Shown here piece by piece: positions 61,251 through 62,899 of a DNA stretch of 64,000 nt. The DNA is from Anolis carolinensis. Lineage: Eukaryota. The notes under the pieces are model-generated. The model was not told the DNA's origin. It made no database searches and saw only the letters and a program-made list of their open reading frames with translations. The first letter of the stretch is position 1. Each line of letters starts with the position of its first letter. The position numbers were made by a program, and so were the translations under genes. The DNA lies in NCBI RefSeq assembly GCF_035594765.1, contig NC_085842.1:10043256-10107255 (forward strand), given 5' to 3'.

Positions 61251-62144
61251 ATGGCAAGTCCTCTACCTCCCTATCCTAGATCACACACAGGGGAGAAGTT
61301 ACATCAGTGTCTGGAATGTGGGAAACAATTTGATTGGAAAAATTCTCTTACTGTACATGAACGGACCCACACAGGGGAGAAGCCCTATAAATGCATGGAA
61401 TGTGGAGAAAGCTTCAGTCGGAGTGACAGTCTACGTTCCCATCAAAGGACCCACACAGGGGAGAAGCCATATGAATGTATGGAATGTGGAAAGAGCTTCA
61501 GTCAGAGTGGACATCTACGTTCCCATCAAAGGACCCACACAGGGGAGAAACCCTATAAATGCATAGAATGTGGAGAAAGCTTCAGTCGGAGTGACAGTCT
61601 ACGTTCCCATCAAAGGACCCACACAGGGGAGAAGCCACATAAATGCATAGAATGTGGAAAGAGTTTCAGTCAGAGTGGACATCTACGTTCTCATCAAAGG
61701 ACCCACACAGGGGAGAAGCCACATAAATGCATGAAATGTGGAGAAAGCTTCAGTCAGAGTGGCAGTCTACGTTCCCATCAAAAGACCCACACAGGGGAGA
61801 AGCCACATAAATGCATGAAATGTGGAGAAAGCTTCAGTCAGAGTGGCAGTCTACGTTCCCATCAAAGGACCCACACAGGGGAGAAGCCGCATAAATGCGT
61901 AGAATGCGGAAAGAGCTTCAGTCACAGTGGCAATCTACGTTCCCATCAAAGGACCCACACAGGGGAGAAGCCATATAAATGCATAGAATGTGGAAAGAGC
62001 TTCAGTCAGAGTGGACATCTACGTTACCATCAAAGGACCCACACAGGGGAGAAGCCACATAAATGCATAGAATGTGGAAAGAGCTTCAGTCAGAGTGGAC
62101 ATCTACGTTCTCATCAAAGGACCCACACGGGAGAAGCCACATAA
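61251..62144 (+). CDS. C2H2 ZNF type A, copy A2: 10 in-frame fingers from agaATGg, ending HTGEAT*
   Basis: ORF 61230-62144, first ATG at 61251; acceptor tttgtctgcag|60960. Confidence 0.72.
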
Positions 62145-62899
62145 ATGCATGAAATGTGGAGAAAGCTTCAGTCAGAGTGACAGTCTACGTTCCCATCAAA
62201 GGACCCACACAGGGGAGAAGCCATATAAATGCATAGAATGTGGAGAAAGCCTCAGTCAGAGTGGCAGTCTATGTTCCCATCAAAGGACCCACACAGGGGA
62301 GAAGCCATATAAATGCATAGAATGTGGAAAGAGCTTCAGTCAGAGTGACAAGCTACGTTCCCATCAAAGGACCCACACAGGGGAGAAACCCTATAAATGC
62401 ATAGAATGTGGAGAAAGCTTCAGTCGGAGTGACAGTCTACGTTCCCATCAAAGGACCCACACAGGTGAGAAGCCATATAAATGCATAGAATGTGGAAAGA
62501 GTTTCAGTCAGAGTGGACATCTACGTTCCCATCAAAGGACCCACACAGGGGAGAAGCCACATAAATGCATAGAATGTGGAAAGAGCTTCAGTCAGAGTGG
62601 ACATCTACGTTCTCATCAAAGGACCCACACGGGAGAAGCCACATAAATGCATGAAATGTGGAGAAAGCTTCAGTCAGAGTGACAGTCTACGTTCCCATCA
62701 AAGGACCCACACAGGGGAGAAGCCATATAAATGCATAGAATGTGGAGAAAGCCTCAGTCAGAGTGGCAGTCTATGTTCCTATCAAAGGACCCACACAGGG
62801 GAGAAGCCATATAAATGCATAGAATGTGGAAAGAGCTTCAGTCAGAGTGACAGTCTACGTTCCCATCAAAGGACCCACACAGAGGAGAAGTCACCTTAA
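62145..62899 (+). pseudogene. nine further finger repeats (6 + 3) out of frame after 2-bp deletions at ~62129 and ~62631
   Basis: ORFs 62074-62646 and 62576-62899. Confidence 0.85.

Follow-up and report, generated by a model that had tools for sequence, protein, structure and literature searches.

A stop codon inside a zinc-finger array, with recognizable fingers beyond it, has been described in human ZNF252, where 11 finger motifs, some of them degenerate, come after the stop and further fingers stand in frame after it (PMC2865497); the same paper cites a review of array-internal truncation in KRAB-ZNFs. The zinc-finger array of PRDM9 has been described as a coding minisatellite (PMC3890296), with mouse PRDM9 having repeat units that carry stops at the last array position, and PRDM7, a broken paralogue of PRDM9, has disruptive mutations within its 84-bp repeats (PMC4874674). 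In Anolis carolinensis, 723 ZNF-only gene models have been reported (PMC3971581). Here we set beside these genes two finger arrays of A. carolinensis, A1 and A2, in which the same frameshifted, stop-bearing linker occurs five times. We also weigh a likeness to the cassette systems (chicken immunoglobulin pseudo-V genes, trypanosome VSG and Neisseria pilE/pilS), in which conversion is programmed, runs in a set direction and at a high rate, responds to known triggers, and goes with selection for variation.

The window, meaning the whole stretch of DNA that was analysed, comprises 64,000 nucleotides (NCBI RefSeq assembly GCF_035594765.1, contig NC_085842.1, positions 10,043,256 to 10,107,255 of the forward strand; positions given below count from its first letter). 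It holds a squamate zinc-finger gene cluster with six finger arrays of 84-bp units: A1 (1-1168, its 5′ part cut by the window start), B1 (9853-10824), B2 (33380-35191), and A2 (61251-62899) on the + strand, and C1 (about 17084-18008) and C2 (about 43509-44517) on the − strand. Tandem Repeats Finder reports 90-91% matches among the 84-bp units, and 32 of the 33 complete A units have the canonical C-X2-C-X12-H-X3-H pattern, each in its own frame, with TGEKP-type linkers joining them. When the A2 open reading frame (ORF) was used as a protein query, the matches were vertebrate C2H2 ZNFs carrying PF00096 and PF13465. Squamates supplied the best ones, at 71-74% identity, namely C2H2 proteins from Podarcis, Rhineura, Eublepharis, and further lizards; none exceeded 74%, all are generic squamate or other vertebrate ZNFs, and the product of the A locus was not among them. 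The C genes, both on the − strand, have SCAN exons near 21576 (C1; 21516-21576) and 53026 (C2; 52966-53026), and a KRAB A-box lies near 49132 (− strand) in C2 only, C1 apparently being without KRAB. The lizard ZNF-only genes are alike in that they are polydactyl C2H2 genes without KRAB, SCAN or BTB, clustered beside SCAN-KRAB genes, and the window has the same layout; the published catalogue demanded ORFs without in-frame stops, and interrupted arrays of the A1/A2 type would count in it only up to the break (PMC3971581).

Array A2 begins with an ORF at 61251-62144 (+ strand) that runs from an ATG through 10 C2H2 fingers (frame 2), all of them canonical, to the residues HTGEAT and a TAA at 62142-62144. 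Its end lies in a linker with a 2-bp AG deletion (62124-62144), which we call a stop-linker. Beyond it, a first post-stop block (62146-62646) holds six intact-looking fingers in frame 0 and ends in a second stop-linker (62626-62646), and a second block (62648-62899) holds three fingers in frame 1 and ends at the ancestral stop, HTEEKSP-stop, at 62897-62899; in the finger at 62732, the first zinc-binding His is replaced by Tyr. Past the ancestral stop lies a decayed finger relic (62900-62983), whose second Cys codon is a stop and whose helix is degenerate. Array A1 has the same construction. Its first block (1-499, frame 1), truncated by the window start, holds at least six fingers and ends in a stop-linker at 479-499; the second (501-833) holds four fingers in frame 2 and ends in a stop-linker at 813-833, where the deletion sits on a different unit body, which we call the u15 type; the third (835-999) holds two fingers in frame 0 and ends in a stop-linker at 979-999; and the fourth (1001-1168) holds two fingers, again in frame 1, and ends at the ancestral stop (1166-1168). 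The 3′ flanks, 1169-2270 in A1 and 62900-64000 in A2, share 99.73% identity. Typing units from the first Cys codon thus reproduces the finger counts given by an earlier sequence-only reading, 10+6+3 for A2 and at least 6+4+2+2 for A1. That reading had also noted the order HSGN-QSGH-QSGH ahead of the first visible stop in both arrays, with different fingers farther upstream, and this holds: the unit orders of A1 and A2 are unlike upstream of HSGN.

The 2-bp deletion is the same in each case, as the sequence-only reading had claimed. Across the whole window, as assembled, the + strand has exactly five instances of the 21-nt deleted linker, starting at 479, 813, 979, 62124, and 62626, and the − strand has none. 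Compared with an intact linker, AG is missing between CACAC and GGGAG, so that the linker reads Thr-Gly-Glu-Ala-Thr-stop; each deletion brings a TAA 12 nt farther on into frame, and all five stop-linkers come after a QSGHLRSH finger and read HTGEAT-stop. Besides the AG deletion, the 33 A units contain no further indels or in-frame stops, and the 57 fingers of arrays B1, B2, C1, and C2 show zero frame changes.

The earlier observation that the protein ends just after a complete finger is correct but automatic. Every A unit contains stops in both off-frames, and the frame entered by a 2-bp loss has a TAA in each linker, plus a TGA in units with QSD helices; any frameshift in an A array therefore ends within one unit, and since the deletion is itself in the linker and the hidden TAA follows it by 12 nt, the product runs on for only two residues past the normal linker start. 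We considered whether the position of the stop is a design feature and rejected this, given the hidden stops in both off-frames of every unit. The C-terminus of HTGEAT type is itself ordinary, since the intact B1 and B2 genes also end within a linker, in HTGEKPHK-stop.

Several features fit a finger-only gene model for A2. The ATG of A2 (61251) has conserved counterparts in B1 and B2, in frame across a 9-nt indel, with A at −3 and G at +4, and in A2 it lies 19 codons ahead of the first finger's first Cys codon; in-frame stops lie upstream of it, at a distance of eight codons in A2 and one codon in B2. A motif scan of the + strand of the window found no KRAB or SCAN, both motifs being confined to the − strand and the C genes. 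A2, B1, and B2 thus look like finger-only ORFs without an N-terminal effector, judging by their starts (61251-61310 in A2), and such ORFs form a class abundant in lizards (PMC3971581). The in-frame stop eight codons before the A2 ATG also argues against a PR/SET-containing product, with upstream exons being possible.

Poly(A) signals after the first stop of A2 are found only beyond the array, with ATTAAA at 63228 and AATAAA at the equivalent of 2456 (in the A1 flank, ATTAAA is at 1497 and AATAAA at 2456), and the post-stop units would therefore be part of the 3′UTR. Nonsense-mediated decay should spare a transcript whose stop is in the last exon, and we predict that a 10-finger protein is made from A2. 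Three post-stop linkers (62464-62469, 735-740, and 901-906) have a GGG to GGT change that makes CAG/GTGAGA, a consensus-like 5′ splice donor; these donor-like sites sit after the first stop, in the presumed 3′UTR. Between the C2 5′ end and A2 lies a GC-rich island (55500-56800) with GC up to 0.70, CpG observed/expected up to 0.66, GA/GAG-type simple repeats, and a run of N (56118-56262), which may be a divergent promoter for C2 and A2. About 500 bp upstream of the A2 exon, open frames at 59952-60793 (+ strand) resemble, by eye, part of a LINE ORF2 (endonuclease/RT), and this segment looks like a retrotransposon remnant.

In the sequence-only reading, unequal crossover or conversion was proposed to carry the deletion along the array as a repeat variant, and the units support this. 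Four of the five stop units (62064, 62566, 419, and 919) are identical across all 82 nt; the fifth, at 753, joins a u15-type body (identical to 62482) to the deleted linker, and the AG deletion thus stands on two unit backgrounds. Within A2, a repeat at an offset of 502 (six units minus 2 bp) is perfect over 251 bp and extends over 350 bp with two mismatches. Its perfect copies are 62027-62277, with stop-linker 1, and 62529-62779, with stop-linker 2 (both + strand); the first spans the boundary of coding sequence and presumed 3′UTR, and the direction of exchange is unreadable from the repeat. A1 has a 152-bp tract with one mismatch at an offset of 500, and the stop-linker spacings equal six, four, and two units minus 2 bp. 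A nearby TCT marker is linked to the deletion in four of the five copies, and nine intact linkers of the same local context are unaffected. Recombinant unit 753, together with an intact GGT-variant linker at 835, requires more than one simple crossover. We also considered independent recurrence of the deletion and rejected it: the units are identical, and a 1-nt microhomology is all that the site offers by way of simple slippage context. Since simple repeat slippage does not account for the deletion, it is implausible that the lesion arose five separate times.

This copying is very recent. The 3′ flanks of A1 and A2 differ by three mismatches in 1101 aligned bases, and the shared array core (A1 245-817 and A2 61890-62546) differs by two mismatches, one whole-unit indel, and the state of one linker, which carries the deletion in A1 but not in A2. 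Divergence is thus about 0.3% in both the core and the 3′ flank, yet downstream of the core, too, the unit orders of A1 and A2 differ. Because unit indels, differing unit orders, and a change of linker state have accumulated at so small a divergence, whole-unit rearrangement in the A arrays is much faster than point substitution. The anatomy of the arrays, the copy tracts, and their age are shown by the assembled sequence. By the same measure, the cluster as a whole grew in at least two waves: comparison of the window with itself identifies the B-C block at 7178-22121 and 30727-53548 as tandem duplicates with 92-96% identity, and since the A1/A2 flanks are 99.7% identical, the B-C duplication is much older than the copying of A1 and A2.

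As in ZNF252, the finger exon of the A arrays is interrupted by a stop, beyond which complete and degenerate finger motifs line up in the 3′UTR (a presumed one in the A arrays), and the shortened ORF keeps canonical fingers; in both A2 and A1, the stop lies inside the array with further finger motifs downstream in the same exon. The A arrays differ from ZNF252 in that the break is a 2-bp linker deletion that has itself been multiplied, two times in one array and three in the other, and in that the post-stop fingers are almost pristine because the array is very young. With PRDM9 they share highly similar 84-bp units, variation at DNA-contact positions, and rapid gain and loss of whole units. 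Variation among 29 units falls mostly at helix positions −1 (Q/R/H), +2 (G/D), and +3 (S/H/N/K); the A arrays show traits of a coding minisatellite: 84-bp units about 90% alike, variable helix positions, and fast whole-unit turnover. Unlike PRDM9, A2 appears to be a finger-only ORF, with no PR/SET, KRAB or SSXRD part seen, and we do not claim PRDM9 membership for it; in PRDM7, the lesions are described as multiple stops, whereas in the A arrays one lesion has been copied as a repeat variant. We thus regard the A arrays as a tidy but ordinary case of kinds already known, and nothing in them shows a selected system.

The explanation we favor, and consider probable, is that one young AG frameshift truncated a finger-only ZNF and was then copied passively within a minisatellite-like array. 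A finger-only Krüppel-type C2H2 gene, with 84-bp finger units that behave as a coding minisatellite, would be present here in two very recent copies, A1 and A2 (or in two haplotypes). A single AG deletion would have arisen once, in a TGEKP-type linker after a QSGH finger, sending the ribosome into an off-frame with a hidden TAA in every linker, so that the ORF ends at HTGEAT and the downstream fingers become 3′UTR. The deletion-bearing unit would then have been copied passively with its neighbors, through unequal exchange between sister chromatids or alleles and through short tracts of conversion within the array, with further copying when the locus was duplicated; we assume that this spread was neutral. 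The post-stop fingers would look intact since the copying is only about 0.3% old, not since they are maintained. The null explanation of the sequence-only reading, plain decay of a pseudogene array, fits best once it is amended to an array that is young rather than decayed.

On this explanation, the locus offers a clean and datable snapshot of a single frameshift acting as a repeat variant inside a coding minisatellite, in which the protein would have dropped in a single step from 16-19 fingers or more to 10, with the lesion then multiplied by the exchange that shuffles fingers. There is also a lesson for annotation: out-of-frame fingers look perfect in young arrays, and six-frame motif scans overstate protein finger counts. 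If exchange across the stop is frequent, fingers in the 3′UTR would be a passive source of new coding fingers, which is of interest for ZNF and PRDM9 evolution.

The same copying mechanism would operate if the gene were dead, with the A arrays being untranscribed or untranslated pseudogene copies, the 10-finger ORF a by-product, and the array drifting. No A-locus product was found among the annotated proteins searched, and exact-product look-ups of the post-stop ORFs (62149-62643, 504-830, and 62651-62896) likewise found none in annotated proteins; however, B1 and B2, which are intact, are absent from annotated proteins in the same look-ups, so that missing records say little. The + strand showed no effector domain in the motif scan and has no demonstrated promoter, but the conserved ATG shared by A2, B1, and B2 has a good start context, the indel between them is in frame, and every pre-stop finger of A2 is canonical. 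Structurally changed units are present, with Phe to Leu and Arg to Cys changes at 62230, 62732, and 1085, and the His to Tyr change; all three lie after the first stop of their array and none before it, a distribution that would speak against a dead gene but is not significant (Fisher p = 0.23), and the units, being copies of one another, are not independent. Taking these points together, we regard a dead gene as possible but unlikely.

Less likely still is an effect of assembly, in which the two haplotypes of one locus were set end to end as A1 and A2, or some of the five deletions were copied between identical units by the assembler or polisher, or both. The 99.73% flank identity is within the range of heterozygosity, each array has a run of N at a distance of about 5 kb, downstream for A1 (6008-6253) and upstream for A2 (56118-56262), assembly of tandem 84-bp repeats is difficult, and the deletions are known from the assembly alone. 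Against this stand the linkage of the TCT marker and the unaffected state of the intact same-context linkers, and a 2-bp loss is not a simple homopolymer length error. A search of sequencing runs found 20 runs from nine studies of one organism that contain 73-78% of the sampled 31-mers of the locus, and thus most of its words. Even if A1 and A2 were allelic, the copies within each array would remain, two in A2 and three in A1.

The sequence-only reading had suggested that the deletion could set protein length and preserve silent fingers able to recombine into the coding part, in the manner of a cassette diversification system. In its fullest form, the frameshifted tail would be a kept store of silent fingers whose helix types missing from the coding part (QSDK and QSDS) feed that part, with the copied stop-linker as a movable terminator that resets protein length. 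If true, a ZNF gene would here have a cassette mechanism, acting in the germline, for rapidly changing its DNA-binding specificity. The A arrays do resemble cassette systems in having one expressed segment beside silent, non-translatable homologous segments with which it shares sequence. QSDK and QSDS helices occur only after the stop in A2 and ahead of the first visible stop in A1 (QSDK being found in A1 both before and after it), a unit with an HQK marker lies before the stop in A2 (61728) and after it in A1 (1001), and one copy tract runs across the junction of coding sequence and UTR. The QSDK comparison rests on the 5′ part of A1, which is outside the window, and the first visible stop there may not be the first.

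Nevertheless, we judge a selected reservoir to be very improbable, and the proposal of a cassette diversification system is unsupported. All three patterns are expected from passive unequal exchange; units shared across a stop are to be expected in any homogenizing tandem array, and the direction of transfer is unreadable. Cassette systems use directional, programmed conversion, whereas exchange between the units of a single array is to be expected in any case. The post-stop units give no sign of constraint that goes beyond their young age. When the 17 post-stop A fingers were compared with the 16 pre-stop ones, changes that break a Cys or His numbered 1 of 17 (the His to Tyr change) and 0 of 16, with about 0.5-0.7 expected per side neutrally, so that the comparison has no power; at 0.3-0.4% divergence, only about four to six substitutions are expected in the 17 post-stop fingers and a similar number in the 16 before the stop. 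That the post-stop fingers have not decayed is thus uninformative, since an array about 0.3% old would show the same under neutrality. No dedicated machinery or signal is evident, and a literature search for a ZNF cassette or reservoir precedent found nothing relevant. Programmed +1 ribosomal frameshifting, by which a ribosome slipping at the stop would return precisely to the finger frame, through a linker shortened by one residue, and make proteins of 16 or 19 fingers, is scarcely credible, because this geometry is a trivial consequence of a 2-bp deletion, two or three successive shifts would be required, no specific stimulatory element can be singled out in the repeat, and the site, ACA-UAA-A, differs from the UCC-UGA-U site of antizyme-type +1 shifts (PMC1874602).

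Two further observations concern the arrays around A1 and A2. Purine-rich, satellite-like tracts of GGAAG/GAAAA type, with periods of about 57-101 bp, lie 3′ of both C arrays (15363-16402 and 39055-42437), the one within 39055-42437 being about 2.7 kb long. In B2 (33380-35191), RSDSLRS fingers, which have a type-A helix, alternate with the array's own ESGHLRIH fingers in a higher-order repeat of two to three units, and these mixed helices suggest either exchange between A-type and B-type arrays or common ancestry.
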